Translations under genes and position numbers: made by a program
Assembly: GCF_016432865.1 (NCBI RefSeq)
Contig: NC_067400.1
Coordinates: 629,424,001 to 629,488,000 of the forward strand
Length of the DNA stretch: 64,000 bases
Source of the DNA: Antechinus flavipes
Lineage: Eukaryota
Direction: 5' to 3'
Notes under the pieces: generated by a model
The model's input: the letters and a program-made list of their open reading frames with translations, nothing else
What the model was told of the DNA's origin: nothing
Database searches by the model: none
In this document: positions 3,082 through 54,123 of the stretch, piece by piece
Layout of the letters: the number at the start of each line of letters is the position of its first letter
Numbering within the stretch: position 1 is the first letter of the stretch

Positions 3082-12178
<9,097 letters not shown>

Positions 12179-28099: not shown

Positions 28100-29473
28100 G
28101 TATCTGGCACAAGTCCTTGACAAAAGCTTTCTACGATCACTAAAGTTTCTTTTTTTTTCTTTCTATTTTTTTAATTTAATAATAACTTTATATTGACAGA
28201 ATCCATGCCAGGGTAATTTTTTACAACATTATCCCTTGCACTCATTTCTGTTCCGATTTTTCCCCTCCCTCCCTCCACCCCCTCCCCTAGATGGCAAGCA
28301 GTCCTATATATGTTAGATATGTTGCAGTATATCCTAGGTACAAAATATGTTTGCAGAACCGAACAGTTCTCTTGTTGCACAGGGAGAATTGGATTCAGAA
28401 GGTAAAAATATCCCGGGAAGAAAAACAAAAACGCAGATAGTTCACATTCGTTTCCCAGTGTTCTTTCTTTGGGTGTAGCTGCTTCTGTCCATCATTTATC
28501 GATTGAAACTGAGTTAGGTCTCTTTGTCAAAGAAATCCACTTCCATCAGAATACATCCTCATACAATATCGTTGTCGAAGTGTATAATGATCTCCTGGTT
28601 CTGCTCATTTCACTTAGCATCAGTTCATGTAAGTCTCGCCAGTCCTCTCTGTATTCATCCTGCTGGTCATTCCTTACAGAACAATAATATTCCATAACAT
28701 TCATATACCACAATTTACCCAGCCATTCTCCAATGGATGGGCATCCATTCATTTTCCGGTTTCTAGCCACTACAAACAGGGCTGCCACAAACATTTTGGC
28801 ACATACAGGTCCCTTTCCCTTCTTTAGTATCTCTTTGGGGTATAAGCCCAATAGAAACACTGCTGGATCAAAGGGTATGCACAGTTTGATAACTTTTTGG
28901 GCATAATTCCAGATTGTTCTCCAGAATGGTTGGATTCGTTCACAGCTCCACCAACAATGCATCAGAGTCCCAGTTTTCCCGCATCCCCTCCAACATTCAT
29001 CATTATTTTTTCCTGTCATCTTAGCCAATCTGACAGGTGTGTAGTGGTATCTCAGAGTTGTCTTAATTTGCATTTCTCTGATCAGAGTGGTAATAGTTTC
29101 AATTTCATCATCTGAAAATTGTCTGTTCCTATCCTTTGACCATTTATCAATTGGAGAATGGCTTGATTTCTTATAAATTTGAGTCAGTTCTCTATATATT
29201 TTGGAAATGAGGCCTTTATCAGAACCTTTAACTGTGAAGATGTTTTCCCAGTTTGTTGCTTCCCTTCTAATCTTGTTTGCATTAGTTTTATTTGTACAAA
29301 GGCTTTTTAATTTGATGTAATCAAAATTTTCTATTTTGGATCACTAAGGTTTCATAAGCCCAGTGTCTGGCACAAGTCCTTGACAAAAGCTTGGTACGGT
29401 CACTAAGGTTTCGGGAGCCCAGTGTCTGGGACAAGTCCTTGACAAAAGCTTGGTACGGTCACTAAGGTTTCAA
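28100..29473. repeat. 59-bp tandem repeat split by the L1 insertion; a further copy lies at about 31325-31385
   Basis: Unit ataagcccagtgtctggcacaagtccttgacaaaagcttggtacggtcactaaggtttc. Confidence 0.85.
28150..29338 (-). mobile_element. 5'-truncated L1 with a 15-bp target-site duplication
   Basis: ORF2 C-terminus (MQIKTTLRYHYTPVRLAK...CWRGCGKTGTLMHCWW), 3' UTR and poly(A). TSD gatcactaa(a/g)gtttc at 28135-28149 and 29339-29353. Confidence 0.92.
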
Positions 29474-32800: not shown

Positions 32801-33799
32801 CTGAAGCCCCAGTTTCCCACCAAGGCCGAAGCACTAACAATAACAAGCCGGATGACCTGGGACTTCTCCTTTTATGCAAGCGGGAGAGTTTGGGGAACTG
32901 ACCTGGTGGGAGCTGACAGAGGGGCAGGCGGGGCTCCTTCCATCATCCGGTGCCCACTAGCAGGGGGGCCTGGGCAAGTCACCTCACCGCATTAGTCTCC
33001 CTTTCCTCCTCTGGAGAAAGAGCCCGGGAAGGCAATGGTCGGCTCCGCCATCTTTGCCAGGAAAATCCCAAGCGGGGTCACAAAAAGCGACTGGACAACA
33101 GAAAAGCGGCCCTTGTTAGAGATTTTGAGGCACTTGAGAAGACTTGGGACTTTTTCCTCTGTACATGATCCATGTTTAAAATTCAGAATAAAAAAAAATG
33201 AATTTTAAAAAATGATTCCTGGCAACCTTGTGGCTCAAAGCCCGGGCACAGAATTCCGAATTTTGTTTGAACTCAGAGTCACCCCTGCCCTCCCTGTGGG
33301 TACTTGAAATAAATCTTCTAGAAAGTTGCCCAAGTCAAAGCCACCATCGTTTGGGGCGCCGGCCAGGCCCACCGAGCGCTCAGGAAGGGGAGCGCTTTTC
33401 GCTAGTCGGCCTGGCTGCCCCCAGGAGGGCGAAGCCCAATCTCGCCGGGGGAGCCCAGGGGCACAGCGGGCATCTCTAAGCAGGGTGGGCTCGGACCCGG
33501 CAGAGCGGGCTCGGACATTGCCTTTTGGCCCCTAGTGGAATGGAGGCGCCCTGGCTGCCCCGGGCGGTAGGATCCGGACAGGCAGGGGTCTGCCTTCCCC
33601 ATTCGCACTCTGTGTGTTAACAGCGGATAATGACGGCTTGGGCTTCAGGGGACCCGCACTGGGGAAGCGCTTTAACGTTAGGTCTCAGGCGAGCCGCATC
33701 ACCCCCTGGGGGGCGGAATGATTCCTATTTTACTGATGAGGAGACTGAGGCGTACAGAAGCGCAGTGAATAGCCCCGCCCAAATCCGGGTCTCTCGGAC

Positions 33800-34650
33800 T
33801 CCAGGCCTTAATTACATGGAGAACAAGGCGCTTGTAGTAGAGGAAACTAGTGACGTCACAGTTATCCCACTTATCGTGATTAGCTCCTGCGGGTGGAGGA
33901 GGGGCCGAGGCCGGTGGGAGGAGGGGCAAATAAGTCTTGGAGGGGCGCTCCCGTTATCGTGCCGACCCATGAAATGACTAAATGACAAAGTTTATTATTC
34001 TGATAGCTTTACAGTAGTGAGTAATTCCTAATAAACGACCAAATAAAATGCGTGTTCCTCCCAGGGCCCATTCCCAGCGTTTTCCTCCCTCGCCTCACCG
34101 CCGGAGGACGAAGCCGGCGCCGCGCGGGGCCTCTGGGAAATGTAGTTTTCCATGGGAGGCCTAGAGGCGCCGGGCGCATGTGCACACACCCTTTTTGAAG
34201 CTGTTCCGCTCTAAGGCCCGGCCCCCACACCTCCAAGGGCAGGGGGAGGGGCTTAGGGAGAGGGTCGGCTGTAAGAGCCAATGGAGTTGCGCCCCGGGCG
34301 CTGGGGGTGAATTCGCGAGCGAAAGTTTTCCCTCCAAAGGGAAGTAGGGCGTCGAACTCGGCGGGCGCGCTCCCGGACCCGCAACAGCCTCGGTGAGCGA
34401 GCCTCTGCCTCAGTTTCTTTTCTCGACCGATGGGATCTGGCCCCGTCCACCGGCTCCCCCTCCCCCAGTTTTCCCGCCTCCCAAGTAAGAGGGGGAGGAC
34501 TTGGCCTCGAACCCCAGGGGACAGTCCTGCCTAATGAGGCCTCTGGGGGCCGCAACCCTGCCCGGAGGGGGCGGGGCCCTGGGTTACCGCCAGTGTCTAA
34601 GCAATGCGCTCTTTATTGGTTCAGCACCTTGTCACGGGGCGCGTCTGTCC
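33800..34650 (+). promoter_or_regulatory. CpG-island promoter and putative non-coding exon 1 (donor GTGAGC at 34393) of the NLRP gene
   Basis: CRE TGACGTCA 33851-33858; ZNF143-type ACTACATTTCCCAGA (minus, 34132-34146); NRF1-like GCGCATGTGC 34174-34183; CCAAT about 34278; E2F-type TTTCCCGC about 34470; GC box about 34568. Confidence 0.6.
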
Positions 34651-34679
34651 CGCCCTGCCCCGCCCCGCCCCACCCCCAG

Positions 34680-34946
34680 CTGCCCTACCTCCCCCTCGCC
34701 GCCCCTCCCCTCACTCACTCTCACTTTCACTCTCCCTCCCCTCACTCTCTCCCCCTAGCTCTCCCTCACTCTCTCTCACTCTCCTCTTCTCTCCCTCCTC
34801 CCTCTCTCTTCTTCCCTCCTTCTTCCTTCTCCTCTTCTCTCCTTCCTCCCTCTCTTTCTTTCCCTCCTTCTTCTCCTTCCTCTCTTTTTCTCTTCCCTCT
34901 CCCTCCTCCCTCTCCTTTTCTCCCCCCTCCTCCCTTCCTCGTACAG
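34680..34946. repeat. Long polypyrimidine/CT tract ending in a probable acceptor (gtacag at 34946)
   Basis: About 260 nt of almost pure C/T. Confidence 0.75.
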
Positions 34947-35116
34947 AGAGGGCACGGGGTGGGCCTGATCCTGGGCCTGACCTGGCCACTGTCCTTTCAG
35001 GGTCCGGTTGGCCTTGTGTGAGGCAGGTGACAACTTGGTGCTGGCCACAGGGACGAAGGTCCTCTGGTCCCCTGGCCCCCCTTTGGTGAGACGGGACCCC
35101 CAGAGTCTGCGAGAAC

Positions 35117-38100
35117 ATGGAGCAGCCCCCAGAGAGCGGTGAGTGGCTCGCCAGGCTTGGCCCCCCTTTTCTCCCCAGTCTCTGGGGGCCTTCTCTGCCT
35201 TGTACCCTTTTCTCCCCAGACTGGGGAGGTTGTCTCCATCCTGTATCCCCTTCTCTCCCCAATCTTGGGGGCCTCCTCCGCCCTGTACCCCTTCTCCCCC
35301 AGTCTGGGGGCCTCTATCCTGTGCTCCCTCCTCCCTAGTCTCTGGGGGCTTCCCTCCTCTGCCTTGGGGGCCCTTGTTTCTCAGCTTTGCTCTTCTGTAT
35401 GGTGTGGTCATAGCTTAGAGGCTCTTTGGGGGGGTGGCACTTTGGGCCCTGCTCTCTGCGGGTACAGAGTGAACCCTCTTGCCTCCTGGGCTGGGTCATG
35501 CCCAGAGGTGGGATGGCCCGAAGGGAGCACTGCAGTGACTGACTGTCCCTAATTCCCCATGGGGCTCCACCAACAATGCCCCCCGTATATGTCTGTTCCT
35601 GACATTTTTCACCTTATTCTTGGTGATTCAGAGCTTGCTTTCATGTGGTTCCCCCTTCTCCCCCCCATTTGTTGGTGGGATCTGAACCCTGGTCTCTCTG
35701 GCTTTGGGTCTGGATGCTTGTCACTTTGTATCTCATCCTGCCTCACTGACCATGAGGGAGCTCGCTGAAAGAGCTGACGGGCACTGGGTCGAATGGAAGG
35801 GGGCCCCCCCGGGATGGGGAAGGTGTGGCGAGACCCCGACCGTCAGTGACCTTTGTTTGGTCCACAGAGGCCGCTGAGATGCGGGGACGGATTGGAGCCA
35901 GCCCGGTAGAGAAGGTCATTGAGCCGGAGGAGGACTCAGGTGAGTGGGGCCCCTTGGCAGGATGGGGGAGCGCAGCAGATGGGGGCAGGCTGCAAGTGTG
36001 GGCAGTGTTGTGCTCAGCCAGCTCCGATGGCTGCTTTTCCTTCCATTAACAACCATTCCTTATTTACCCTTATTCGTGCTAATTGCCTAATGTGAATGTG
36101 AATCCTAATTTGGTCCTCTTAGTGCCGTTTGTCCTTACTACCTCGAGTAGTACTATGGCCATTATGACCATGAATTTCCATGACTACTCACTGCCTCTAC
36201 CACCACCTCATTCCACCAGTAGCTACTCCCGCTGCTCTTAGCCACCACCATGACCACTTCTTATAATACTGCCACCCTTACCACCTATTACTGTCCCAAC
36301 AACTACTAAGTGCTATCATTGCCACCTCTCACTGCTAACTCCGAGCGTTAGTCCTACTGAGCGCTCTTCACTTCCACTTCCTGCCCCTAGTACCTTTAGT
36401 AACCCCAATCCCACTAGCCAACTACTAACTGCCACTGAACACAGTAGAATTAACTGCTCTAACTACCATTGCTACTATATTTAGTACCATGACTAACTAC
36501 TATTAGTAGTAATATTACTAACTCTTGACTGTCCCACCTACTTAGTATCACCAGGAACGCCATTACCACCAGTGACTACTGTTACGACCACCATTACTAT
36601 TACCTAATACCACGACCAACTACTGTTACTTCTTTTAACTACTCTCCTCTCTCATAGCTCCATACTGCTATAATACCCCTACTTACTACTACCATTCTTA
36701 TCGTCCCTTACTGCCACTGTCACTTAACTGTCACCTCGCAAAGTACGACCACTACTGTTAATACTTTTAACTACTCTTCTCTCCCACTACTCCATGCTGC
36801 TGAGTGACTACCACTTCATACCAGTACTAATAGTAATTAGTAGCAACTCTTACCTAATGCTCCTAGCTCCTATCACTAGTAACACCATTATTACCTACTA
36901 CTAACTGCCATTCTTACTGTCATGTAGCACAAAACTACTACTACTGTTACTACTTTTCACTACTTTTTTCTCCTACTACTCCATACTGCTGAGTGACTTA
37001 TCACTTCATATCAGTACTACTAGTACTATAACTTTTATTACTTGCAATTCTTACCTACTGTTCCTAACTCCTTTAATTAGTAACACCATCACTACCTACT
37101 ACTGTCTGCCATTGTTTCTGTTACTCAGCACAACTACTGCTATTGTTATGACTTTTAAGTACTCTTCTCTCCATACTGCTGAGTGACTATCACTTCATAC
37201 TAGGACTAACTACTGTTAGTAGCAACTCTTACCTGCTGCTCCTAGTTCTATCACTAGTAGCACCATTACTACCTACTACTAACCACCATTTTTACTGTCA
37301 TGTAGCACAAAACTACTACTACTGTTACTACTTTTAACTACTCTCCTCTCCCATAGCTCCATACTGCTACAATACCACTACTTACTACTACCATTCTTAT
37401 CGTCCCTTATTGCCACTGTCACTTAATTGTCACCTCGCAAAGTATGATCACTACTGTTACTACTTTTAACTACTCTTCTCTCCCACTACTCCATGCTGCT
37501 GAGTGACTACCACTTCATACCAGTACTAATAGTAGTTAGTAACAACTCTTACCTGCTGCTCCTAGCTCCTATCACTAGTAAAACCATTATTACCTACTAC
37601 TAACTGCCATTCTTACTGTCACTTAGCAAAGTACTACTATTTTTACTACTTTGAACTACTCTTCTCTCCATACTGCTGAGTAGCTACCATTTCATATCAG
37701 TACTAACTACTGTTAGTAGTTAGTAGCAACTGTGACCTGCTGCTCCTGTCACTAGTAACATCATCACTACTTACTACTAACAGCCTTTTCACTGTCCCCT
37801 AGTACAACTACTATAACTACTATCGCTTTTACTTAGTACTGCCACTGACTATTTTGGCTGATGCTTCTACTCACTTCCACTCCCTTGGACCACTAGTACT
37901 AACTCTAGCATTATCTATTGGCTACAGACTAGTAAGAGTAGTGCCTGCTGCCTCCAGTCTTGAGCTCTGCCCACTGTCCTCTCTGGCCAGCCCTCTGGCT
38001 GAGCCTTTCCCTAGCATCCCTGGGACGAGCCCCCACAAGGGGCAGGAACCAGAGGGTGGAGATGTGGCTGGGGTCCTGGGGATCCTTTCATCCAGCACTT

Positions 38101-41100
38101 TACAAAAGAACAAACTGTCAGCTCGAGGGGTGTCAGGTTAATCTAGGTTCAGATTTCACATTCAGCAGGCACAGACGAGGAAGGGAGGCCTACAAGTTTA
38201 TTGCTGATGTAAACAATGGTAAAAAGACTTGTAGTGAAAACTGTTACACAACTTAACAGACAACCATTATCATGCTATAACAAAAACAGAGAATAAATAT
38301 AAACTACATCGTCATTAATTCGGGAAACATCAACTCTGGACCCTTCAGGGCTGGGGGAGCCCCACATCAGGCTGCTGGTCAGAGTATACCCCAAATTGGG
38401 AAGAATCCCAGGCATAGTGTTCCCCTCCTTGGGTGAATAGCCCCCCCCCCCCCCGCCCTATGGGATTTATACACTGAGAACAAAGAAGGTACTACATCCA
38501 GTTTATTATTTGATATACGACCTCCTGGACAGAAAAGCTCCCCAGAGAGGGGCTCTTCCATCAAGGAGAGTGCTTTCTTCATTCCCTTATCCCAGCTGCT
38601 TCACTCAGGGAACTAACCAAGTTTTCAGAGCGAAACACATGCCCTCAAAGGAAGGTCTTAAATCGAACACAAGGAGACGTGCTCCGCTCTTCCTGTGGCT
38701 CCCGGTCTCTTATCAAATAATCGCAAGCACGTTCTCTTGTTCTTGGTAAGAAGTTCTACAAAGGGACCTGACCTTCCAGGAGATCCCTTACAAATCACAG
38801 AAAATACCCCAAGGATGTGGTCAAGACTTAGTACGATTTCTTAGTTGGGGAAGGGACTCGCTCCAAGTCCCAGGTAGCACCAGCGCTACCATATCCAAGG
38901 TAGTCAAATGACAGAGATGGAATTTGAACTCCGGTCTTTGACCTGGAGGCGGCAAGGGGGCACTACGATGCATAGAGTGCACGGCTCAGTCGGTAAGACC
39001 CAAATTCAAGTCCAGCCTCAGTCATTGACTAGCCCTTATCTGCCTCAGTTTACCACCTGTAAAGGGCATGAAAACAGCACCAAGGTGCTATGCAAACCTC
39101 AAACGCCAGCTGCCTCCCAGTGCGGGGCTCCTTAGCTACCTCCTGCCTGAGCGAACATTGGCGGTACTCGAGCTTTTAAAATCCCCTTGTTTGCCACGAA
39201 GGAGGGCTGTCCTGTGGGCATCATGGCCTTCGTGGAACAAAGCCCAGGCTCAGCTCATGTGCCAGCTTGGTGGTTTTATGTCTGTAACCATGGGCCTTTT
39301 TGACTTCTGTCCACAGATCCTAGAGCAGGGTCTGTTGATCCTAGGTTAAGAACTGGTTAAGAACTGTGGGTTTTTCTTTTCACCTAGTCAACAAACATTT
39401 ATTGAGGAACCTATTATTTTCCAGGGAGTGTGCTAACCAATGGAGATACAAATAAGGGTTAAGAACAAAACAAAACAAAATAAAAAACCAAACCAATCTG
39501 TGCCCTCAAGAAGCTTATAATACAATTCATTAAGGGAAGCTGAAAAGAGGTGGGGTGATGAAAGTAAAGAGGCTGATATTTATGGAGTTGAAACCAAGCA
39601 AAGCAACTGATGGGAAATTAAGTTAGCTGGAAATGGTGATCCTTCTGTAATGGGAAGCTTTGGGAGGACTTTATTGCTCTGGCCTCCAGCCTTTTCATGT
39701 GTAAATGATCTGACCAATTAAGAATAGAATCCTATCACTTTGATTTATTCTCTCTAAAATACGGCAGTGTTCCCTGATCACGTTCTAGACATGCACTTCC
39801 ATTACTGCAAATTTGTGAGCATTTTAGGTAGCCCACCAGACCATACAGCTTAAAGCCTATAAGAACCTTTGTAAGTAACCAAAAACAAAACAATAGCAAC
39901 AAAACCCTCTAGATTTTTCTTATGTAAACTATTCTGCAAGTGATTAAAAAAAAATTAGCTTCCCCCCTGCAAAGTACATGCAGAGATAGTTTTCAACACT
40001 CAACCTTGCAAAACCTTGTGATTCAAAATTTTTTTCCTTCTCTGCCCCCCACCTCCTCCCCTAGACAGCAAGTAATCCAAAATAAGTAAAACATGTGCAG
40101 TTCTTTTAAATATATTTGTTATGCTGCCCAAGAAAAATCAGATCAAAAGGGAAAAGTGAAAAAGAAAAAAAAACAAAAAAAAAAGGTGAAAATATGATAA
40201 CTGTGATCCACATTTGGTCTTCATAACTTTTATCTCTGGGTGTGGATGGTTCTCTTCACTTCAAATCTATTGAAACTGGTCTGAATCATGTCATGGTTGA
40301 AAAGAGCCATGTCCCCTAATACATTGTTGGTGGAGTTGTGAAGGAATCCAGCCATTCTGGAGAGCAATTTGGAACTATGCTCAAAAAGTTATCAAACTGT
40401 GCATACCCTTTGATCCAGCAGTGTCTCTACTGGGCTTCTATCCCAAAAAGATACTAAAGAAGGGAAAGGGACCCACATGTGCCAAAATGTTTGTGGCAGC
40501 CCTCTTTGTAGTGGCCAGGAACTGGAAACTGAATGGATGCCCATCAATTGGAGAATAAATTGTGGTATATGAATGTTATGGAATATTATTGTTCGGTAAG
40601 AAATGACCAGCAGGAGGATTTCAGAAAGGCCTGGAGAGACATGAACTGATGCTGAGGGAAGTGAGCAGGACCCAGGAGATCATTATATACTTCAACAACA
40701 ATACTATATGAGGATCAATTCTGATGGACGTGGCCATCTTCAGCAATGAGATTGAACCAAATCAGTTCCAATAGAGCAGTAATGAACTGAACCAGCTACA
40801 CCCAGCGAAAGAACTCTGGGAGATGACTACGAACCATTACATGGAATTCCCAATCCCTCTATTTTTGTCCTCCTGCATTTTGGATTTCCTTCACAGGCTA
40901 ATTGTACACTATTTCAAACTCCTTTTTGTACAGGAAAATAGCTGTTAGGACATGTATACTAATATTATATTTAATTTATACTTTAACATATTTAACGTGT
41001 ACTGGTCAACCTGCCATCGGGGGGACGGGGGTGTCGGGAAGGAGGGGAAAAGTTGGACAAAAGATTTGGCAATTGTCAAATTACCTATGCATATAACTTG

Positions 41101-44100
41101 TAAATAAAAACCTGTAATTAAAAAAAAATTTAAAAAAAAGATTTTCCACTCAAAAAAAAAAAAAGAGCCATATTCATCAGACTTGATTATGGTAGAGCCT
41201 TGTTGCCGTGTACAATGATCTCTGGTCCTGTTCATTTCACTCAGCATCAGTTCATGTAAGTCTCTCCAGACCTCGCTGAAATCCTCCCACTGGTCGTTTC
41301 TTACGGAACAATAATATTCCATAATATTCATATACCAGAACTTATTCAGCCATTCTCCAATGGATGGGCATATATTCAGTTTCCAGTTTCTTGCCCACTA
41401 CCAAAAGGCTGCCACAAACATTTTTGCACATGTGGGTCCCTTTCCCTCCTTTAAGCTCTCTTTGGGTTAGAGGCCCAGTAGAAATACTGCTGGATCAAAG
41501 GGTATGCACAGTTTAATAACTTTTTGAGCATAGTTCCAAATTGCCCTCCAGAATGGTTGGATCTGTTCTCCACTCCACCAACAATGCATCAGTGTCCCAG
41601 TTTTCCCCATGTCCCCTCCAAAATTCATGACTGTCATTTCCTGTCATCTTAGCCAATCAGAGAGGTGTGTAGTGCAATCTCAGAGTTGTCTAATTTGCAT
41701 TTCTCTGATCAATAGTGATTTGGAACACCTTTTGAAATGGGTAGAAATAGTTTCAATTTCTTCTGAGAATTGTCTGTTCATATCCTTTGACCATTTATCA
41801 ATTGGAGAATGGCTTGAATTCTTATAAATTTGAGTCAGTTCTCTGTATATTTTAGAAAATGAGGCCTTTATCAGCAACATTGGATGTAAAATTTTCCCCC
41901 TCAGTTTTCTGCTTCCCTTCTAGTTTTGGCTGCATTGGTTTTGTTTAATTGAATATAATTGAGATTATCCACTTTGTATTTCATCACGTTCCCTAGTTCC
42001 TGGCCTGTGCATTGTAGAATTCACCCCCATGGAGGCCCCTAGATCTCAATCCTGCGGTCCTGGCCCTCTGCTCTTGGGACTTGAGTGGAACATGAAGGCT
42101 ACTTCAGGAAAGCCCTACCCCGCCGCCACCCGTTAACCCTTGTTTCTCCGGCTTTTTTCATGACAGATGACAGGAGGAGATACAGAGCCTGGATGGCGGA
42201 GAAATTTAGTTCCTTAAGGGCTGGAGACTCTTGGCCGGGAGAGCGGGAGAACTTCCTGTACGGGCCCACCACGCTGCTGTTCTCCCGCACCTGCGCCAAG
42301 GTCCGAGTGGTCATCGGAGAAGAGGGTTCCGAGCTCCCCCCTGGCGAAGGGCCACCCTTCAGCGAGATCCCCGGCCAGGCCGGGCAGCTGGCGGCACTGT
42401 TCCAGCCCTACGAGAGGACTGACCGGCGACCCAACACCGTGGTCCTGCAGGGGCCCATGGGCATCGGCAAGACCGTGCTGGCCAGGAAGCTGATGCTGGA
42501 CTGGGCCCACGGGCACCTCTGCCGGGACGTGTTCCAGTACGTCTTCTACTTCAACCTCGGCGACATGGACGGGACGGCGGAGAAGAGCATGGCCGAGCTG
42601 ATCTCCGGAGAGTGGCCCAGCCCGCCGGTCCCCGTCTCCGACATCCTGTCGCAGCCCCAGAACCTGCTGTTCGTCCTGGACGGCTTGGAGGAGCTGAAGC
42701 CCTTCCTGGACGGGCCCGAAGCCGAGCTGTGTCGCGACTGGAACGAGCCCCGGCCGCTGGCCAGCCTGCTGCAGGGGCTGCTCCGGAGAACCCTGCTGCC
42801 CGAGGCCTGCCTGCTGCTGGTGGTGCGGCCCTCGGGCTGGGCCCGCCTGGCGCGCTGGCTGGGCTGCCCCCAGCTGGTCGAGGTCCTGGGGCTGTCCAAG
42901 GCCGACCGGGAGGAGTACTTCCACCGCTTCTTCGGGGACCGGGCCAGCGCGCGCGCCGCCCTGGCCACCGTGCGGGACAACGAGACGCTGGCCACCCTGT
43001 GCCGCTCGCCGCTGGTCTGCTGGCTGATCTGCACGGGCCTGAAGCAGCGGCTGGATGACGGGCAGGACCTGAGCCAGGGCCCCCTGACCGCCACGCGCCT
43101 CTACGTGTCCTACGTGACCGGGCTGTTCCGCGGGCGCGCCGCCCCCCAGGAGAGCCAGCTGCGGGCTCTGTGCCGCCTGGCGGCCGACGGCGTGCTGGCC
43201 CACGCCACGGGCTTCGACACCAGCGACCTGCAGCGGCACATGCTGACCCCGGCCGACCTCGAGCCCTTCCTGAACACCCACATCATCCTGGGCCGCGCCG
43301 GCGGCTACGCCTTCCTCCACCTGACCCTGCAGGAGTTCTTCGCGGCCCTGTACAGCGCCATGGAGGTGACCCGCAGCCCCTCGGCGGCGCACTCGGTGCA
43401 AGACCTGACCACCGAGCTGGAGAAGTACTCGGGCGTGGACACGAGCTTCCTGAGCCTGGCCGTGCACTTCCTCTTCGGCCTGCTGAACCCCGAGTGCGCC
43501 CGGCTGCTGGACGCCGAGCTGGGCTGCCGCCTGTCGCCCCAGCTGCGGCGGGACCTGCTGCTGTGGGCCGCCGTGTTCAGCGGCTCGGCCGCCCCCTCGC
43601 TGCGCGCCCTCTCGCTGCACCACTTCTTCTTCAGCCTCTACGAGACGCAGGACGCGGCCTTCGTGGAGGAGGCCATGGACCACTTCCGGGACCTGCAGCT
43701 GGTGCTCTGGAGCAAGGTGGACCTGCTGGTGTCGTCCTTCTGCCTCTGCCACTGCCGCCGGCTCGAGAAGCTGGTGCTCCACCTGCAGAGGGAGGTCTTC
43801 CACGAGCAGGACCCCGACGACCCGGAGTCACCCGCGGAGGCCGAGGCTGGGTGAGCGCGGGCGGCCTGGCGGGCGGGAGGCCGTCCTAGAGTGGGGCACC
43901 TCCCCCTAGAGTAGTGGGGCTCCTCCCCCCAATATGATGGGGCTCCTCTCCCTAGAGTGGTGGGGCTCCTCCCCCTAGAGAGGTGGGGCTCCTCCCCCTA
44001 GAGTGGTGGGGCTCCTCCCCCTAGAGTGGTGGGGCTCCTCCCCCTAGAGTGGTGGGGCTCCTCCCCCTAGAGTGGTGGGGCTCCTCTCCCTAGAGTGGTG

Positions 44101-47100
44101 GGGCTCCTCCCCCCAATATGATGGGGCTCCTCCCCCTAGAGTGGTGGGGCTCCTCTCCCCAATATGATGGGGCTCCTCTCCCTAGAGTGGTGGGGCTCCT
44201 CCCCCTAGAGAGGTGGGGCTCCTCCCCCTAGTGTGGTGGAGCTCCTCTCCCTAGAGTGGTGGGGCTCCTCCCCCTAGAGTGGTGGGGCTCCTCCCCCCAA
44301 TATGATGGGGCTCCTCTCCCTAGAGTGGTGGGGCTCTTCCCCCTAGAGAGGTGGAGCTCCTCTCCCTAGAGTGGTGGGGCTCCTCCTCCTAGAATAGGGT
44401 CCTCCCCCTAGAATAGGATTCTTCCCCCTAGAGTGGGGCATCTCCCCCTAATATGATGGGGCTCCTCCCCCCCTTAATATGATGGGGCTCCTCCCCCTAG
44501 AATAGGGTCCTCCCCGTAGAGTGGGGCTCCCCGCAGTGGCTTTGGGACCTGGCCCGGGCCTCCCCCAGCCGCTTTCCAACTGTCCCTTTGTCCTTCGTCC
44601 AGGCCCCAAGCTTTGGACCTCATCGCCTCGCGCTGGAAGGCGCTGTACACCGTGCTGAGCACCAACGCCACCCTGCGGGAGATGGAGCTGAGCTTCTCTT
44701 CCATGAATGACCTCTGCATGAAGTGCCTGAGTGACCAACTGAGCCATCCCGACTGCCGCCTGCACACCCTGAGGTGAGGGGGCCGGGGAGGACGGGGGAC
44801 CCTGGGGAGGATGGGGGACCCTGGGGAGGACAGGCCCAAAGCTGGGCTTGACCCAAAAAAACCATGCGGGACCCTCAGAGAGAGCCCACTCAGTGAGTGA
44901 GGGAGCTGAGGATGGAGCCAGCCAGTGTAGACAGCTTTCCTAGGAGTTGGCGGGGCATAGAGTGCGATAGCTTGGGGGGGCAGCTTTAAAGATTGGCGAA
45001 TTCCCTGGGCATCCACACCAGTCATTTTGGGGGACCCTCCTTTTTCCTTCTCCCTGGAATTGCCACCTTCGGAATTTCCCATCCCTCCTGGGGTGAGTGT
45101 GCAAGATTTTAGTCAGAGGCTTTCTGTGGAAGCCTCCGTTCCTTCTTCGTCAAACAAGGGATCCCAGTAGTGCCCACCACCCAGGGGTGGGTGTGAGGAA
45201 GTGGGGGGGGAAGAGTATTTGTAAAGGGCTTTGAGAACCTTAAATGACTATCAGTCCTCCCTCCCTTATCTCNNNNNNNNNNNNNNNNNNNNNNNNNNNN
45301 NNNNNNNNNNNNNNNNNNNNNNNNNNNNNNNNNNNNNNNNNNNNNNNNNNNNNNNNNNNNNNNNNNNNNNNNNNNNNNNNNNNNNNNNNNNNNNNNNNNN
45401 NNNNNNNNNNNNNNNNNNNNNNNNNNNNNNTCTCTCTCCCCTCCCTCTCCTCCCTCCCTCTTTCTCTCCCTCCCCTCCTTCCTCCTTCCTTCCTTTTCCC
45501 CATCTTCCTTGTCTCTCTTCTAGCTGTTACCTGATCTACCAGTAGCTTTGGGCCGAGCCCCAAACGAGATGAGTGGGGCTCCTGAAGGGGGGTGGGCAAT
45601 GTTGGGGAACAATGGCCACTCTGGGTGGGGCCCTGGCGGAGGCCGAAAGGAACAAAGGGCCTCCTCGGGCCTCCCTCCCCGCAGGATCAGGCAGACCGCC
45701 TTTGTCCCCTTTGCCTGTGGAGACTTCCCGCTGGCTCTCATCGGGCACCAGCATCTCATATGCCTTGACCTGGATCTTCAGCTGGGGGATGATGGGATGA
45801 AGCTGCTGTGTGAGGCTTTGAGACACCCCCAGTGTAACCTCCAATATCTGAGGTGAGTCTTCCTCAAAACCCTGTCCCTCCCCCCCTTCCCCGTGCCCTT
45901 TTTTGGATGGGGGAAGCACCCATGATTTGCCAGCTGTGGCTCCTTAATGGGACCAATGATGGAAGAACAGTGGGTGATGGCGAAAGGAAGGCCGATCTCA
46001 CCTCAGGACGCGGAGCACCCCGGGCCAGAAGCCACCCTGCAGCGTTCTCCCCAGTGCTCTTGCGGGGACCCGCTGGGGCTGAGGATGAACTCAATGGTGG
46101 CACAGAGTGGGGGCTTAGAAATGACTGCCAAGGGCAGCCGGCCGGTGCAGCGGATGGGGTACCAGCCCTGAGGTCAGGAGGACCTGGTTCAGATCCCACC
46201 TCAGAGGCTTAACATTTCCTGGCTGTATGACCCTGGGCGAGCCACTTAACCCCAGTTGCTTCAGGGGAAAAAACTGCTCTTGCAAAGGCCTTCTCAGGCC
46301 TCCCTTCACCCGTAATCGGGGAGTCACTGGGCTCTGGGCTATGCCTGGCATTTTGGGAGCCTGCCCGAAGCCTCCCTACCTGAAGCCTCCCTGCCCTCGG
46401 CCCCAGGACCGAAGAATTTGACAGGACAGGACTTGAGTAGCTGGGGTGGGCAGGAGACTAGAGCAGGCAGGCTCCCACCTGCTAGCGCTGTTGTGGTGGT
46501 CTGGGGAGCAAGTAGGAAGGCCTGGGGAGGGGAGTTGCAGGAAGGGGGTGAATTTGAGGGGTGCTGCCAAGGCGAGATCCTCATATGGTTATGAGGTGAG
46601 TTGCACAGTGGCGCGCCTCAGTCGGGGGTGTCCTTGGCATCAGGAGGGGAGAAGAGGGAGGAGTCGGTCCGAAGGAGAGCATTTTGTTTTGGGCGTGTGG
46701 AGGCTCAGCTGATTGGGGCAGTTGAGGAGGCTCAGGTGATTGGGGCAGTTGGAGAGGCTCAGGTGATTGGGGGCAGTTGGGGAGAGGCCAGAGGAGGTCT
46801 GCAGGAGTGGGACCTGAGAGTTCTCAGCTGAGAGGGGATCGCCCAATCCATGGGACTGATGGGATAGCGGGAGGAGCCCCGAGGGGCACCCAGGGTCAGA
46901 GGGCCCGACCGGGGAGGAGCCAGCAAAGGAGACAGACATCGGGATAGGGCGGTTTCAGTGGATGGCGCTCCAGAGGGCAGGGAAGCCACAGGACCAGTTA
47001 TGGGACTGCAGGTCGGGGAGGTCTAGGTGCAGCAGGAGGAGGGAGAGGCTGAAGCTGAGCCGGAGAAGGGGGATGAGGGGTGGGATGGAGGGGCCGCCTC

Positions 47101-50100
47101 GGGAGAGGAGATGGGAGCCACGGAGCCATGGCACGGCCACGGCCTCTTGGGTGAATCGGGCTCGGAGCTGGGAGAGCGGGGCTTTGGAAGCGCCGCTGTG
47201 GAGAGTAAGGCCGGCCCAGGGTTGGCCGCGGCAGCGAGGGCCCAGCTGTTTAACAAGCGGCTCAGTCTGAATGGCGGCAGGATGTAGGAGGGACCCTAGG
47301 AGGGATCTGAGAAAGGGGATTAATAACTTAAGAATGAGGCACCAAGAGGTCACAGTGGGGGGAGGAGAAGTCACGGAGGGGCTGGGCAGTTATGGAGAGG
47401 CAGAGGGAGCCCATAGATGGGGGTTGCCTGAGGGAATTCAGCAAGAGTGAGCATGGAGATGGTCCGTGTGTGAGGCAGAATAGCTCATTGGTTAGGGTGT
47501 TTGAGGGGAGAGTCTGTGTATGAGTCTCCTAGGAGGAGGAGGGCAGGAGTTGGGGAGGAGAGAAATATTGGGAACCAGGGACCAAACACAGGGAGGGAGG
47601 GGAGACTCGGCTCCAGGACTGGGATTGGGCAGGAGCTACGAGGAGCAGGAACCTCAGAGGCTACTGAGTGACGGGGGAAGGGGGGCTCTGGAAGCAGCAG
47701 TGGGGAGCCTGGGCCAGTGAGGGGAGGGGCAGCCAGGGAGGTTCCGTCTGCAGGGAGGGCCAGGTTTCGGAAGGAGGGAGTACATGGAAGGAGGACGAGA
47801 GGAATAGATTTAAGCTGAAGGTGGTTAATGGAACAGGCACAAAGCCTGGGGACTTTGGGGAGGGAGAGTGGGGGGTTGTGGGAAGTCGGGTGGGTGGGGT
47901 GATGGGGGTACATCTGGGTCATAATCTGCAAGGGCTGAGAGTCACTGGGATGGGAAGGGTGTGACCAGTCCCTCCCCATCGAGCGGAGGCAACCCTGGGA
48001 GCCCCCCCGGGGATTTCGGGTCGGCGCAGGAGGCGGAAGGTGCCTTGGCTGCGCAGGTGGAAGATGCCCAGCGCCGCTCATGCCCCTGGCTGCCTCCCGT
48101 CAAGGTCACGCGGTGCCCGGCGGGAGATGCAAGGCTCAGGGCACCCTGGGTGCGAGGGCTTCTCGCTGCAGAGGTGGTGAGGAGGGGGCAGCAGGAAGCG
48201 TCGGGGGCAGGGAACTGAGGCTGAAGTCTGCGTTCAGATTCAGCTTTGACTGGGCGCATCGCTCTTGGGGGACCCGAGCCGAGGACCGTGTGGTGTCCCT
48301 CTCGGCCCACCCCGGGGTGCTCGGCTGCCTCCTCCCTCCTTCGGGAGTCTTCCTTCCTCTCCCAGCCTTCTCTCTCAGCTTCCCAGCTCTCTCCAGTGTC
48401 TCATTAGTCCCCGCTGGCTCCCCCCATCCCCCCCATGCGGTCATGGCCAGGTCCCCCCTCCTGCCAGTGCTGCCCTTTCTCCTGCTCTCCTGCCCAGGAC
48501 AGTTGTTCTCTGTTCAGAAAATAGAAACATGGGGTGGGGGGTGAGGAAAGGGGGAGGAGGGTGGGACAAGGAGAGACCCCAAGGGCAGAGGAAGAGGAGA
48601 TGGAGGAGCTGACGGGGACAGGCAGGACAGAGACATGAACAGAACCTCAGACACGCAGATGGGAGACGCAGCAGGACGGGAGGGGAAGGAGGAAGAGTGG
48701 GGAGGGGAGGGGACGGGACAGGGAGGGGAGGGGGGAGGCGGGCGGCCCCGTGACGCTCACTGCTCGCCCCCCAGGTTGAAGAGCTGTGCCCTCACCAAAG
48801 CTTGCTGCCCAGACCTGGCCCTGGCCCTCACCTGCAACCAGAGCCTGAGCCACCTGAACCTGGAGGGGAATCAGCTGCTGGACAGCGGCGTGCAGGTGCT
48901 GTGTGAGGCCCTGAACCGGCCCGAGTGCCACCTCCAGAAACTGGTGTAAGTAGCCGCTCCCCCGCTCCCGTACCGGGGGCAGGCTGGGGGGCCGCGGGAC
49001 TTCTCGGGGTGACTGAGATTCCCTCGCCTGGGAAATGGCGCCGTGGTGGGCATCCGGGAGGAACGGGATAAGGCTGGGGAAGGCAGTGAGAGCTGTGGTC
49101 AGACTTGGAGGGCCAGCACACGGAGGAGGGGCCAGCCTTGCCCAGCTCCAGGGGCACTTATGGTGGACGGGAGGTGATGGCGGAAGGGGGAGGGTGTGAT
49201 GGCAGACGGGGGGTGATGGCGGACACATCTGGCGATGGTGGCTTTGGGTCGGCACTCGTAGACACCGAGTAGTGCAGTGGTTCACCCTGTGAGGTTGCAG
49301 AGGGCAGTCGAATTACATGAGCCCTGTTATGTCTCGATGGTCTTAAACATGCATAGAAATAGGGAAAGACTGCACCGGGGAGGGCAGGAGAGGAAGGGGG
49401 AGGGAGGTCGGGGCAACGGCGTCTCACGTACTCGGGGTGAGCGAGTAGACGTCGCTGTGAATGGAGGGGAACGGGTGCGGGGAAGCCTGACCCGCATCGA
49501 ACCGGTCAAAGGAGACCCTAAGCAGAAATGTTTCCCTCAGCAGAGAAGTGGGAAGGAAGAGAAGAGACAGGGAATGGGGGTGGGTTAAGCCCTAAGCAGA
49601 GCAAACGGAAGAGCCGCAGACCTTTAGAACGGGCCTTTTTTGGTGGCCAAGAGCTGGAGAAGGGGCCGTCACGTTTGGGAAATGACTGAACAAGAGCCTC
49701 CGAATGTTGAGGGGCACACTGGTGCCGGGAGCAGGCAGGAAGGGAGTGGCTGCAGGGCAATCTGGGCAGCTTCCGTGCACAGAACCAGGGGGCAAAGTCC
49801 CTGCGCTTTGGGGGAGCCTTTTGCGTCCCGATCGCACGATTCCAGGAGACTGATGCTGAAGCCTTTTGTGGCCGACGTGGACGGGCGCTGTGCTCCACGG
49901 TCGGGTTTGGATCGGGGCTTTGGTTTTACTCCCTGTTTTTGAGGGGGAGTGCAGGCGAGGGAGAAGAGAAGGGAGGTTTTTTGCCCATTAAAAAAAAGTT
50001 AAGAAACAGAAACAAACCAGGATGGATGGCCCAGGATTGCAGAATAAAAATGTCCTGAAAAAGGGAAGAGCGGCACAGAGCCACAAACGTTGGCCCGTAA

Positions 50101-53100
50101 ACTTGGCTAACTTGAGGACAGGAAGCGGTGATGGAGGGAGCTGGGCCGATCGGGCCCCCGGACTCGCCGCCTTCTCCCCCGGAGCCGGGCCGATCGGGCC
50201 CCTGGACTCGCCACCTTCTCTCCCGGAGCCGGGCTGATCGGGCCCCCGGGCTGCATTCTCTATAAGCTGTCTGGCGCTCTCCTTGTGGAGGAGATGGAGC
50301 CGTGTGCGCCGGATGCCGTCCCAGCCCATTGGCGATTGGATGGACGGGGCTCCCAAGATCATGGACTTTCTGGGTTGTCTGAGCCTCTAGTCTTAAAGAT
50401 GGAGAAACCGAGTCCCAGAAAAGTGCCATCCAGGATCCACAGCCAGGGATCGCGCTTGGGAATTCCTGACTGCCGAGATCTTGTGCCGCATTGAGGGGCT
50501 CAGCCCTTGGGAGGGGGGAGGGCCCTCCTGGGAAGCTAGCTGAAGTGAGTCCAGAGGACGACAGCCTGGATGGGGGGAGATTGGGGCAGTGGGAGGAAGT
50601 GGCTGATGGTAGCATCTGAGGGATCCTGTGTGGAGGAGGGGGTCGCACTTGTGTCTGACCCGAGAGGTGGGGGAAGTAGCCAAGGCAGGTCATGGACGTC
50701 GCAAGCTCCCCCTCTGCGGGGGACCCAGAGGTGGCTGCTTCGGGGGTGCCTCGATGGAGACACCGCTCCCCCCCTTTTGCTCCTTGCCTCTAGCCAGCCC
50801 CTTCTGTTCCTGTCTCCTTGTCCCTCCCCCATAGAAGGCCCGGGGTCATTTCCCACCTCTGTGTGTCCCCCCTCGCAGGTTGGCAGGATGCGGCCTGACC
50901 GACAGTGGCTGCCAGGATCTCTCTGCCACCCTCACCGCCAGCCGGAAGCTCACCCACCTGTGCCTGGCCCACAACAGCCTTCGGGACGAAGGCCTAAAGA
51001 TTCTGAGCACAGCTTTGAAATGCCCCGATTGCCCCCTCCAAAAACTGACGTAAGGCCTCAGGGATGTGCCCTCCAGGGTCCCTGGGTGGGGGCCTTCAGG
51101 AGGGTCCTTGGGGGGGCCTTCAGGAGGGTCCTTGGGAATGGGAGCAGGGGCTCATACCCTTAGTTACTTGGACTCATCTCTGGTAATGGGGCAAGTGCTT
51201 CTGGGTCCTTATGTGGGAGCTGCCCTAGTATGCTGGAGCACACTGAGGAGGAGGAGGGATGGGAGGAGAAGAGAGGGAGGAAGGAAATAGAGGGAGGAAG
51301 GAGAGGAGGGAGGGAGGGAAAGAATAGGACCAGAGGAGACGCAGAAGCCAGAGGCCTCTCCAAGAGGGAAGGAGGGGGCAGGCCCCAGGCTGAGGGGGAC
51401 GCAGTGCCCCCAATGGGGAGGAGCTAGGAGGTGGCCCCTGTCCACGCCCTTCCCAGCCGGGGGGGCACCGGGAGGCAGAGGGGTGGGCACCCCGAGGTCG
51501 GCCACGGCCTGCCCTTGCCCGGCTCGCAGCGTTCCTCAGCTTGGCGGGGGCAGGCGGGGGCAGGCGGGATTCTCCATCTCCTGTGGCCCTTTCAGCACAT
51601 TCTGGCCCTCGTGGGCCCCCAGCTCTCTGTAGCCGACACCGGTGCTGCCTGGGTCCCCCTCGTAAGGAGCCCCTGGCTGTCCAGAGCACCTCAGGAAGGA
51701 GCCCGTCTCCCTTTGCTGGCTGGGGGGCCCTCCCTGCCGTGTGGGTGGGGGCGCACCAGGGCCCACATGGACATGCCTTTGTTCTAGTGAAGCGCAGTGG
51801 CAGAGGGCAGAGGGCAGAGGGTGGGCCCCCCCCATGGCACCCCTGCTTCAGCCTAAGGCTGAGTGGAGGGGGGTTGCTGAGGGTTGGGTTGGGGGCCAGC
51901 GTAGGCCCGATTGCTGGGGGTGGGGCCTGAGTGAGTGCCCCCTCCCCACTATGGGACTGCTCAGTCCCCCGGGGTGGGGGCCGCAGGGACGCCGGGCTCA
52001 GTGGAGGTGAGCGCGCGTCCTGGCCCGGCCTGCAGGTTGTGGAGCTGCGGGCTCACCGCCGCGGGGTGCCAGGATCTCGCCACGGTGCTCCTCAACAACA
52101 AGAACCTGACTCACCTGGACCTGGGGGAGAACGACCTCGGGGATGACGGCATGAAGCTGCTGTGCGCCGCCTTGGCGCAGCCGCAGTGCAGCCTTCAAGC
52201 CTTGGAGTAAGCCCTTGCCGTCTTCAGCACTTACGTAGCACCACTGCATGCAGGGGCTGTGGGCGGGGGTTACCGCGGCCTCGTCGTGTGCCCCTGTCCT
52301 CGGCAAGGGAGCTCCGGCCACGACCCCGGAGGGGGGGACCGAGGCAGAGGGGAAGGGCTCGGGGGCTCGGCCTCGGGCTCCCCCTCACTCCGGCCTCTCC
52401 CACAGCGTCTTGGTCTGCTTCCTCACCGAGGCCTGTTGTCAGGACCTCGCGGACGCCCTCATCCTCAACCGGAACCTGCACAGCCTGAACCTGGGTCACA
52501 ACGCTCTCAAAGATGAGGGGGTCAAGCTGCTCTGCAAGGCCCTGAGACACCCCGACTGTCAGCTCCAGAGGCTCGGGTACATCAGGGGGGCCGAGGGACC
52601 ACGGCGTGGTTCTTGGGGGGGGGCGGTAGGACTGCAGCATGTTTCTGGGGCCACTAAGACTGTAAACTCCTGGGGGGGGGCGAGGCTCATACTTGGCACA
52701 GGCCTTTGTGTTGGCTGGTAGCCGTCCTCCATTCCCCAAGAGGGCCGACATGGCGTCGCTTTGTGAGTCGGGTTACCGTGTGTCCGGGGTGGCCGATTGG
52801 GCCATCGCGGGCTTTGGAACCTTGGGTCACAGCTTGGACACGTGGTCCCTATGGAGGCTGTGGGGCTGGAGCCTTAAGGGAAGGAGGGGGAACCGTGGGC
52901 CTCTGGTAAGGAGGGGGAAGGCCCAAGGGCATCCAAGGTCACGCGATGGCGAGAGGGCAGAAACGATGGGCAGCCCCGCTAGCTGAGCGTTCCAGTGGGA
53001 GCCATGTTAACTCAAGGGGCCGTGGAGTCAGCTGGCTAGAGGGAGGCTCTAGGGAGCGCACAGAGGGCTGCGATCTGCACTTGGGAGTGGAGTGTGTGAG

Positions 53101-54123
53101 CCCTCCCAGGGTGGTGAGAGAGAAGGGGCCAAGCACGGGGCGAGAGGAGGAGAAGCTGAGGACGAGGGCCAGAAAGCCATCTGTGACCTTGGATGAGGGA
53201 ACCTTGGGAGCACAGGGAGCGGGGCCTCTGGCTGGTTCACCCCTTCTCTGCGGAGCCCCCAGCCGGTCTGCACCCTCTACCCCGGGCCTCGGGGCCTCTG
53301 CGCCCTCTACTCACGCCGGCCACGCTCACGGCCTCGCCTGTGTCCCTCGGGCAGGCTGGAGAGGTGCCAGATCAACACCGCCGGCTGCCAGGACCTCTCC
53401 TCGGTCATCCTCTGCAATTCGAGGCTGAAGAGTCTGAACCTGGCCCAGAACGCCTTGTGGGACGAAGGGGTGAGGCTGCTGTGCGAGGCCCTGGAGCGGC
53501 CTGAATGCGGACTGCAGCTCCTGGCGTAAGTGCCCAGCGAAGGCGCGGCGGTGGCGGGCGGACCCTGCTTGGACTCTGTCTCCCTGCCCCAGTCTAATTA
53601 GTGTTCCCTGGCCATTTTTGTGCACCCCAGAGGTGTCTCATTAATGTTCCCCGGCTGGGCCCAGTGTTACCTCAGAGGTGTCTCATTAATGTTCTCCAAC
53701 TGGCCCCCAGTGTACTTGGAGGAGGTGTCTTAATTAGTGTTCCCCGCCCGGCCGGTGCACCCCAGAGGTGTCTCATTAATGTTCGCTGGCCATTTTTGTG
53801 CACCCCAGAGGGGTCTAATGTTCCCTGGCTGGGCCCAGTGTTACCTCAGAGGTGTCTCATTAATGTTCCCCAACTGGCCCCCAGTGTACTTGGAGGAGGT
53901 GTCTTAATTAGTGTTCCCCGCCCGGCCGGTGCACCTCAGAGGTGTCTAATTAGTGCTCCCCGCCGGCCCCCTCCCCCCCAGGCTGTGGAAGGAGGCGTTC
54001 AGCGAGGACGCGCAGCGGATGCTGAAGGCGGCCGAGGAGAACCGGCCACAGCTGGTCATCACTGGCGACTGGTACAGTCACGAGCCCGAGGAGTTCGGCT
54101 TTTCCTGGTGGCTGGAGACCTGA
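35117..54123 (+). CDS. NACHT-LRR protein of the reproduction-related NLRP group (NLRP5/NLRP14-like), apparently without a PYD; about 1037 aa (1050 with an optional microexon)
   Basis: Model: 35117-35138, 35868-35939, (39317-39355 optional), 42167-43850, 44603-44773, 45685-45852, 48775-48945, 50879-51049, 52036-52206, 52406-52576, 53355-53525, 53982-54123. All GT-AG, phases 1-1-(1)-2-2..., no stops. Confidence is high from the NACHT exon onward and moderate for the N-terminal exons. Confidence 0.85.
35160..35350. repeat. About 40 bp minisatellite (about 5 copies) in NLRP intron 2
   Basis: Unit approximately ccccttctccccagtctgggggcctcctctgccctgta. Confidence 0.7.
36130..37930. repeat. G-poor (ACT/TAC)-derived low-complexity region with higher-order about 130/190-bp units
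   Basis: Recurring blocks such as tactcttctctcccactactccatgctgctgagtgactaccacttcataccagtactaatag at about 36770 and 37470. Confidence 0.85.
38050..38770 (-). mobile_element. Probable ERV LTR remnant
   Basis: Plus-strand gtttattg (minus AATAAA) and LTR-like composition; termini not resolved. Confidence 0.35.
40320..41140 (+). mobile_element. L1 3' fragment (ORF2 C-terminus, 3' UTR, A-tail)
   Basis: atgctcaaaaagttatcaaactgtgcataccctttgatccagca...; A-rich tail at about 41103-41140. Confidence 0.88.
41200..41995 (-). mobile_element. L1 ORF2 C-terminal fragment
   Basis: Reverse-complement match to L1 ORF2 ([14 protein letters not shown]...; KNSSHSPIDKWSKDMNRQF). Confidence 0.88.
42167..43850 (+). 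CDS. NLRP NACHT exon (FISNA-like start, Walker A/B, HD1, WHD, HD2)
   Basis: DDRRRYRAWMAEKF; GPMGIGKT; LLFVLDGLEEL; LLPEACLLLVVRP; CRSPLVCW; FLHLTLQEFFAALY; FLFGLLN; SLYETQD. Phase-1 acceptor tgacag and phase-2 donor GG|GTGAGC. Confidence 0.95.
43886..44532. repeat. 23-bp VNTR (tagagtggtggggctcctccccc), about 27 copies, filling the intron after the NACHT exon
   Basis: Direct periodicity, with a variant unit aatatgatggggctcctc. Confidence 0.95.
45273..45430. other. Assembly gap (158 N) within a CT-rich tract of an NLRP intron
   Basis: Run of n. Confidence 1.
46131..46272 (+). mobile_element. WSINE1-type SINE, GC-shifted
   Basis: gggcagccggccggtgcagcggatgg...aggtcaggaggacctggttcagatccc...cacttaaccccagttgcttcagg-A tail. 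Confidence 0.8.
47000..47870 (-). mobile_element. Decayed L2 LINE (endonuclease and adjacent region)
   Basis: Minus-strand peptide IFLSSPTPALLLLGDSYTDSP resembles the L2 endonuclease segment FLSSPTPALILGDFNIH. Confidence 0.55.
53590..53960. repeat. About 44-bp tandem repeat (about 9 copies, with a higher-order duplication) in the last NLRP intron
   Basis: Core (ca)gaggtgtctcattaatgttccc / gaggtgtcttaattagtgttccc. Confidence 0.9.

Follow-up and report, generated by a model that had tools for sequence, protein, structure and literature searches.

The NLRP proteins take their name from an N-terminal pyrin domain (PYD), and the locus considered here raises the question of whether one of them can be intact and maintained without it and, if so, whether the domain was lost or was never present. 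The locus lies in a 64-kb stretch of the Antechinus flavipes genome (contig NC_067400.1, positions 629,424,001 to 629,488,000, hereafter the window), in which a NACHT-LRR gene occupies 35117-54123 (+). The original prediction had described this gene as a functional-looking NACHT-LRR protein with a short acidic N-terminus in place of the PYD. We consider it probable that the gene encodes an intact, maintained 1037-aa reproductive-type NLRP, sister to the eutherian reproductive clade, and that its PYD exon was lost before the crown-marsupial split.

A splice-aware reconstruction, in which the RefSeq protein 'NLRP14 [Sarcophilus harrisii]' (P0065, 1037 aa) was placed on the window by tblastn and a splice-site search, gives 11 coding exons with AG/GT signals at all introns and an open coding sequence (CDS) of 3114 nt. 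Read directly, the 5' end has the predicted form: an ATG at 35117, in the context gagaacATGG, follows an in-frame TGA 30 nt upstream (35087-35089, +) and opens the 22-nt exon 1 (35117-35138, +; MEQPPES plus 1 nt), which ends at the donor AGAGCG/gtgagt. Exon 2 (35868-35939, +; 72 nt, EAAEMRGRIGASPVEKVIEPEEDS) runs from phase 1 to phase 1 between ccacag/ and /gtgagt, and leads to the 1684-nt exon 3 (42167-43850, +; acceptor atgacag/), which encodes the pre-NACHT region, NACHT, winged helix and HD2 and is 99.5% identical in translation to P0065; this chain of junctions, also as predicted, is that of the RefSeq model. The LRR region consists of six 171-nt exons and one 168-nt exon, all phase-matched and on the + strand, beginning with exon 4 (44603-44773) and continuing with exon 5 (45685-45852, the 168-nt exon), exon 6 (48775-48945), exon 7 (50879-51049), exon 8 (52036-52206), exon 9 (52406-52576) and exon 10 (53355-53525), and the 142-nt exon 11 (53982-54123, +) includes the TGA stop. 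The window protein differs from P0065 at three of 1037 residues (G361S, T588A and H645R), and the P0065 N-terminus, MEQPPESEAAEMRGRIGASPVEKVIEPEEDSDDRRRY, is letter for letter that of the earlier model. Of the N-terminal peptide that had been written out for the window, the sequence is as predicted and an extra G at the exon 2/3 junction is spurious; the junction codon is G/AT, that is Asp, and the peptide reads MEQPPESEAAEMRGRIGASPVEKVIEPEEDS-D-DRRRY (...EEDS-D-DRRRY). The description of the rest of the gene as undamaged also stands, with 11 AG/GT exons, an open CDS and intact ATPase motifs (Walker A GPMGIGKT, Walker B LLFVLDGLEE and sensor-1 LLLVVRP). The sole run of N in the window (45273-45430) falls within intron 4, past the NACHT exon, and touches no exon, and upstream of the NACHT exon there is no assembly gap.

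Within the window we find no PYD that could be joined to this gene. A hidden Markov model (HMM) trained on the N-termini of 46 PYD-bearing NLRPs matches none of the 1724 six-frame open reading frames (ORFs) of at least 20 aa in the 64 kb (best E 3.5) and nothing in the stop-masked whole frames (best E 2.3), yet as a positive control it finds 14 of 14 proteins on which it was not trained (NLRP5, NLRP13, NLRP2 and echidna NLRP) at E values of 1e-9 to 1e-18. The region from 21.65 to 41.8 kb has 44 plus-strand ORFs of 75 aa or more, and on these Pfam-A returns no death-fold family and a best E of 0.055, which agrees with the earlier claim that no ORF between EPN1 and the NACHT exon resembles a PYD, and introns 1 and 2 hold no visible PYD relic. 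A cryptic or decayed PYD in the window was rejected on these three negative searches, of ORFs of at least 20 aa, stop-masked frames and the 44 upstream ORFs. The same holds beyond Antechinus. In eight marsupial orthologue models, P0065 and the didelphids included, PF02758 (PYRIN) is absent at E≤1, as are the FISNA, CARD and Death families, the PYD HMM likewise gives no match on the orthologue proteins, and in koala and opossum, two of the species for which such a comparison had been suggested, neither model has a PYD, nor does the gapless koala locus (L001) from 10 kb upstream to 10 kb downstream. In an alignment of 41 proteins the marsupial Tyr37 (of YRAW) corresponds to about residue 127 of NLRP14, 165 of NLRP5, 99 of NLRP4/9 and 134 of NLRP3, indicating that the NACHT exon marks the exact start of homology and that the PYD and linker have no counterpart in the marsupial protein.

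That a PYD exon exists and was missed, as part of an unannotated isoform, outside the window or too diverged to be recognised, has a very small probability in our estimation. Absence was judged from the genome and from protein models rather than from RNA, and a possible acceptor at 35103/35104, upstream of the ATG, could take an upstream exon; set against this, there is no PYD signal on either strand of the 64 kb or in the koala locus with its 10 kb of upstream sequence, the space upstream is filled by EPN1 and U2AF2 on the same strand, the eight independent RefSeq models all lack the domain, and very diverged PYDs were picked up in all of the HMM controls.

What stands in place of the PYD is an acidic 31-residue N-terminus (net charge -6) with predicted disorder, encoded by exons 1 and 2 (22 + 72 nt). 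Compared by Smith-Waterman with the segments preceding NACHT in 24 NLRPs, with shuffled sequences as controls, it gives no z above 1.4, and the 'MEQE..AAE' repeats of human NLRP5, which it seemed at first to resemble, find no support as a relative in this comparison. Behind it the NLRP core is complete: Pfam identifies NACHT (6.9e-45), NOD2_WH (1.2e-9), NLRC4_HD2 (1.2e-21) and LRR_6 (4e-20) in the window gene and its orthologues, and in a sequence search of the PDB the LRR region matches ribonuclease-inhibitor chains at about 1e-80. The features by which an NLRP is recognised, a central NACHT/winged-helix/HD2 module, LRR exons and placement in the family tree, are therefore all present except the PYD itself. 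The AlphaFold2 (AF2) model of the protein (mean pLDDT, the predicted local distance difference test, 80.3; pTM, the predicted template modelling score, 0.72) has residues 1-27 below pLDDT 50, a helix at 32-49 and then a well-folded NACHT-LRR body. Its best fold matches are human NLRP14 (9ln6_A, template modelling (TM) score 0.79/0.86) and the NLRP14 and NLRP5 chains of mouse cytoplasmic lattices; NLRP14 and NLRP5 of the cytoplasmic lattices or subcortical maternal complex (SCMC) give TM scores of 0.70-0.86, compared with 0.30-0.55 for NLRP3 structures.

The gene is shared by marsupials. Orthologue models are present in eight species of six orders (sugar glider, wallaby, Tasmanian devil, Dromiciops, koala, bilby, Gracilinanus and Monodelphis), all named 'NLRP14(-like)' by NCBI, and the translated NACHT exon is 83% identical to the sugar glider protein. 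The N-terminus MEQ..ES / E(E/D)DSD(D/E)RRRY is kept, across orders, in six of the eight models: both of its parts are present in devil, Dromiciops, koala and bilby, the opossum model begins identically but has a longer second exon and so a longer N-terminus, and Gracilinanus (P0069) keeps the acidic motif alone. The P0069 model, which runs to 1362 aa over 54 kb and contains some 130 aa in duplicate, is probably over-extended, its motif lying behind the added N-terminal sequence. In koala the exon sizes are those of the window (22, 72, 1684, 171, 168, five of 171, and 142 nt) with the same splice signals, the 72-nt exon 2 being in the same position and exon 1 consisting of the same 22-nt coding stretch and donor. 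The ratio of nonsynonymous to synonymous substitution (dN/dS), one of the checks proposed earlier, was calculated by the Nei-Gojobori method for a single species pair, devil and koala, with the window CDS as the dasyurid side. It is 0.206 for the whole CDS (dS 0.50), 0.14 for aa 32-120, 0.23 for NACHT-HD2 and 0.18 for the LRRs, and rises to 0.53 in the first 31 codons, a figure drawn from 93 nt with few sites. These values point to a functional gene under purifying selection, in keeping with the undamaged, functional NACHT-LRR protein that was foreseen, and suggest that the N-terminal 31 aa are weakly constrained.

It follows that a decaying relic, drifting towards pseudogene status after loss of its effector domain, is scarcely credible as a description of this locus. 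The signalling domain is indeed gone, and the N-terminal 31 aa, at an omega of 0.53 over 93 nt, are the part on which such a description could draw, but RefSeq carries protein models in eight species of six orders, exon sizes in the window and koala are identical, the ATPase motifs are intact, and we take the overall omega of 0.21 as effectively refuting it.

To which NLRP, then, does the marsupial gene correspond? A PDB sequence search places NLRP14 first (759 bits), followed by mouse NLRP14, NLRP3, NLRP5, NLRP2 and NLRP9. In an exhaustive search of 50% representatives all marsupial orthologues fall in one cluster, and the next full-length match beyond it is a bat NLRP14 (P0099; 45% identity over 929 aa), with NLRP5 proteins scoring about the same as NLRP14 against the window protein. 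We built a tree of 59 proteins rooted on NLRC3 (quick IQ-TREE search, LG+C20), with support from the Shimodaira-Hasegawa-like approximate likelihood-ratio test (SH-aLRT). The marsupial gene is nested in the NLRPs (support 100 against NLRC3) and forms its own clade (SH-aLRT 100), which is sister to the eutherian reproductive NLRPs (joint clade SH-aLRT 99). The latter (13, 8, 2/7, 14, 4, 9, 11 and 5) unite without the marsupial gene (SH-aLRT 95), and outside the whole group lie the marsupial NLRP3/12-like genes, the echidna gene, NLRP3, NLRP12 and NLRP6. On this tree the marsupial gene is best read as the pro-orthologue of the reproductive NLRP clade (NLRP2/4/5/7/8/9/11/13/14), by descent an NLRP that would be secondarily without its name-giving domain, and marsupials appear to retain a single NLRP of the reproductive type, against nine or more in eutherians. 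The closest PYD-bearing marsupial paralogue is a Notamacropus 'NLRP3-like' protein (P0101, 1073 aa, 45% identity), which groups with the marsupial NLRP12-like genes, outside the reproductive clade. P0101 and the orthologue P0064 share one 462-Mb wallaby chromosome record, and NCBI labels an isoform of P0101 'NLRP14-like' too.

True orthology with eutherian NLRP14, as the RefSeq name implies, is highly unlikely. NLRP14 is the best full-length match in both the PDB and the 50% representative library (759-760 bits, 45% identity) and the best fold match, it shares with the marsupial gene the NACHT-WH-HD2-LRR layout and the 171-nt LRR exons, and it is the source of the RefSeq name. However, a clade of the marsupial gene with NLRP14 is rejected by the approximately unbiased (AU) test (p=0.012, difference in log-likelihood (delta lnL) 19.75), eutherian NLRP14 has a PYD, human NLRP14 is on 11p15 and not beside EPN1, and slow evolution of NLRP14, whose stem is 0.33 compared with 0.72 for NLRP5, could account for the high similarity. 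The name is a similarity label, and the gene is misnamed.

The distribution of the PYD bears on the direction of change. By HMM the tree has no eutherian subfamily without the domain, and the NLRP3/12-like relatives from marsupials and monotremes carry it as well; it is missing only in isolated models, one each from bat NLRP5, mole NLRP5, a lizard and a frog. Because the outgroups and every eutherian subfamily keep the PYD, it was most likely lost once, on the marsupial stem, before didelphids and australidelphians separated. The original prediction had left two alternatives side by side, convergent loss and an ancestral state; the first, as a loss independent of that in mouse, fits these data, and the second would require the PYD to have come back in eutherians at an identical exon-phase position. 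An ancestral absence, with PYD-less reproductive or scaffold-type NLRPs to which eutherians later added the domain, is accordingly very unlikely. The marsupial gene is the earliest branch of its clade and one change on either stem would fit the distribution, but the sister groups have a PYD (the marsupial NLRP3/12-like genes, echidna P0071 and eutherian NLRP3/12/6), as do most of the sauropsid and frog NLRPs sampled, and in eutherian reproductive NLRPs the PYD is directly upstream of the same phase-1 NACHT-exon junction, so that a gain requires a PYD exon re-inserted at its original position. The two NLRP5 models without a PYD by HMM, from Saccopteryx (P0072) and Talpa (P0127), represent either further independent losses, like that of mouse, or incomplete models.

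Several observations weigh against the reading of a stem-lineage loss in a pro-orthologue. A clade of the marsupial gene with NLRP5 is not rejected (AU p=0.16, delta lnL 13.2), the tree searches were quick, and the marsupial and NLRP5 stems are both long (0.72-0.73). The exon junctions are those of RefSeq models and of cross-species conservation rather than of transcripts; an additional exon further upstream, untranslated or coding for something other than a PYD, could splice to the candidate acceptor at 35103/35104; and the model N-termini vary, the X2 isoform of sugar glider (P0001, Petaurus) starting at a Met within exon 2, that of wallaby (P0064, Notamacropus) at a Met within the NACHT exon, and the didelphid models having longer N-termini. 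The first of these observations allows the marsupial gene to be a one-to-one orthologue of NLRP5 (MATER) that lost its PYD independently of mouse NLRP5; this is the live alternative, possible but in our judgement rather unlikely. Besides the AU result, it accords with scores of NLRP5 against the window protein that are about as high as those of NLRP14 and with the position of human NLRP5 in the EPN1-linked cluster of chromosome 19. The maximum-likelihood tree, on the other hand, unites the eutherian reproductive NLRPs to the exclusion of the marsupial clade (SH-aLRT 95), and with both stems long, attraction would favour a grouping with NLRP5 artificially.

Whether or not the two are orthologous, mouse NLRP5 is the nearest parallel. 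It is a reproductive-clade NACHT-LRR protein without an N-terminal PYD, the precedent invoked in the original prediction and confirmed in the literature (10.64898/2026.03.30.715201), and its fold is similar (TM about 0.70-0.74 to SCMC/lattice NLRP5 chains). The two differ in that the mouse loss is rodent-specific in a family that otherwise keeps the PYD, while the marsupial one is common to the six orders sampled, in their unrelated N-termini, and in that marsupials have neither OOEP nor KHDC3, the partners of NLRP5 (PMC4247878). The NLRP3/NLRP12-type sensors, among them the marsupial proteins P0002, P0101 and P0114, share the NACHT-LRR core and the phase-1 NACHT-exon junction, with residue 135 of NLRP3 aligned to residue 32 of the marsupial protein, but they carry a PYD and mostly a Pfam FISNA, neither of which the marsupial protein has, they lie outside the reproductive clade, and NLRP3 is a poor match to the predicted marsupial conformation.

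If the PYD-encoding exon was lost before the crown-marsupial split, the two mini-exons would have kept the ancestral phase-1 junction into the NACHT exon while supplying the short N-terminus. Lacking a PYD, the protein would be unable to nucleate ASC/PYD filaments and so would not work as a PYD inflammasome sensor of the canonical kind. The lattices of mouse oocytes have NLRP5, NLRP4F and NLRP14 among their structural components, which bind their partners mainly through NACHT and LRR (PMC13253339), and the marsupial protein would most likely act in a similar way, through its NACHT and LRR surfaces, as an oocyte or early-embryo scaffold, like NLRP5 and NLRP14 in the SCMC and cytoplasmic lattices; by this analogy an oocyte-scaffold role in marsupials is plausible, and our literature search found no paper on expression of the gene in marsupials. 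The OOEP KH domain serves as the docking site for the PYD of human NLRP5 or of mouse NLRP4f (10.64898/2026.03.30.715201), so loss of the domain was perhaps tolerated in marsupials because the OOEP/KHDC3 family, the KH-domain docking partner of reproductive-NLRP PYDs, is absent there. A bolder and decidedly speculative proposal would make the marsupial gene a minimal PYD-independent oocyte scaffold: PYD-to-KH docking would be a eutherian innovation that came with OOEP/KHDC3 and the NLRP expansion, and marsupials, without the partner, would have discarded the PYD and built any lattice-like storage through NACHT/LRR contacts alone.

The protein itself is not new, as the exact model is public in RefSeq for devil, koala, bilby and Dromiciops, and since PYD-less NLRPs are also known from mouse NLRP5 the gene does not represent a new kind of system. 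We found no paper remarking on a marsupial-wide loss of the PYD, which is not proof that none exists, and the small new point appears to be that of a single-copy, misnamed pro-orthologue with a stem-lineage PYD loss. Such a gene would have managed without a PYD since before the crown-marsupial split, under purifying selection, and would offer a natural test of which oocyte-scaffold functions (SCMC, cytoplasmic lattices, storage of UHRF1 and tubulin) need the PYD and which need NACHT and LRR. It could also serve as the outgroup for dating the eutherian NLRP expansion that is tied to imprinting disorders and molar pregnancy.

Directly upstream of the gene and on the same strand are an epsin gene (EPN1), of which the ENTH-domain exon is at 14061-14858 (+; Pfam ENTH 1.9e-51), and further upstream an RRM peptide at 8040-8711 that we take to be U2AF2-like; in Gracilinanus CCDC106 is upstream of the orthologue. 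The human order is presumably U2AF2-EPN1 followed by the NLRP9-11-4-13-8-5 cluster, which would put that cluster in the position of the marsupial gene. The ATG exon is CpG-poor (observed/expected 0.17), in contrast to a CpG-rich block (33500-34500, +; CpG observed/expected 0.75-0.81, GC 0.57-0.62) that precedes it by 0.6-1.6 kb; 33804-34937 aligns with koala L001 8109-9303 at 66%. The block is a probable promoter or untranslated first exon. The candidate acceptor, cccccag/AG at 35103/35104, falls between the upstream TGA and the ATG and is conserved in koala; together with the CpG-rich block it suggests an untranslated first exon.

Between EPN1 and the NLRP gene a GC-rich minisatellite (20006-21534, and also 19028-19339; 30-nt unit, about 51 copies, 87% match) gives rise in each of the six frames to spurious long ORFs, the longest of about 660 aa. 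Two long minus-strand ORFs (28549-29340, - and 40948-41397, -) have no Pfam match at 1e-3, look by eye like L1 ORF2 fragments and match repeated copies in the koala locus. A 235-nt block of intron 2 (38846-39080), 77% identical to its koala counterpart and with an 85-aa ORF in the window sequence, was rejected as a relic exon, being a MIR-like short interspersed element (ctcagttt..cacctgtaaagggcatgaaaa core) with frames broken in koala. Two further tandem repeats adjoin donors of the gene, one of a 41-nt unit in 3.7 copies just past that of exon 1, in intron 1 (35163-35314), and one of a 23-nt unit in about 27 copies (43891-44501) beginning 40 nt past that of the NACHT exon.

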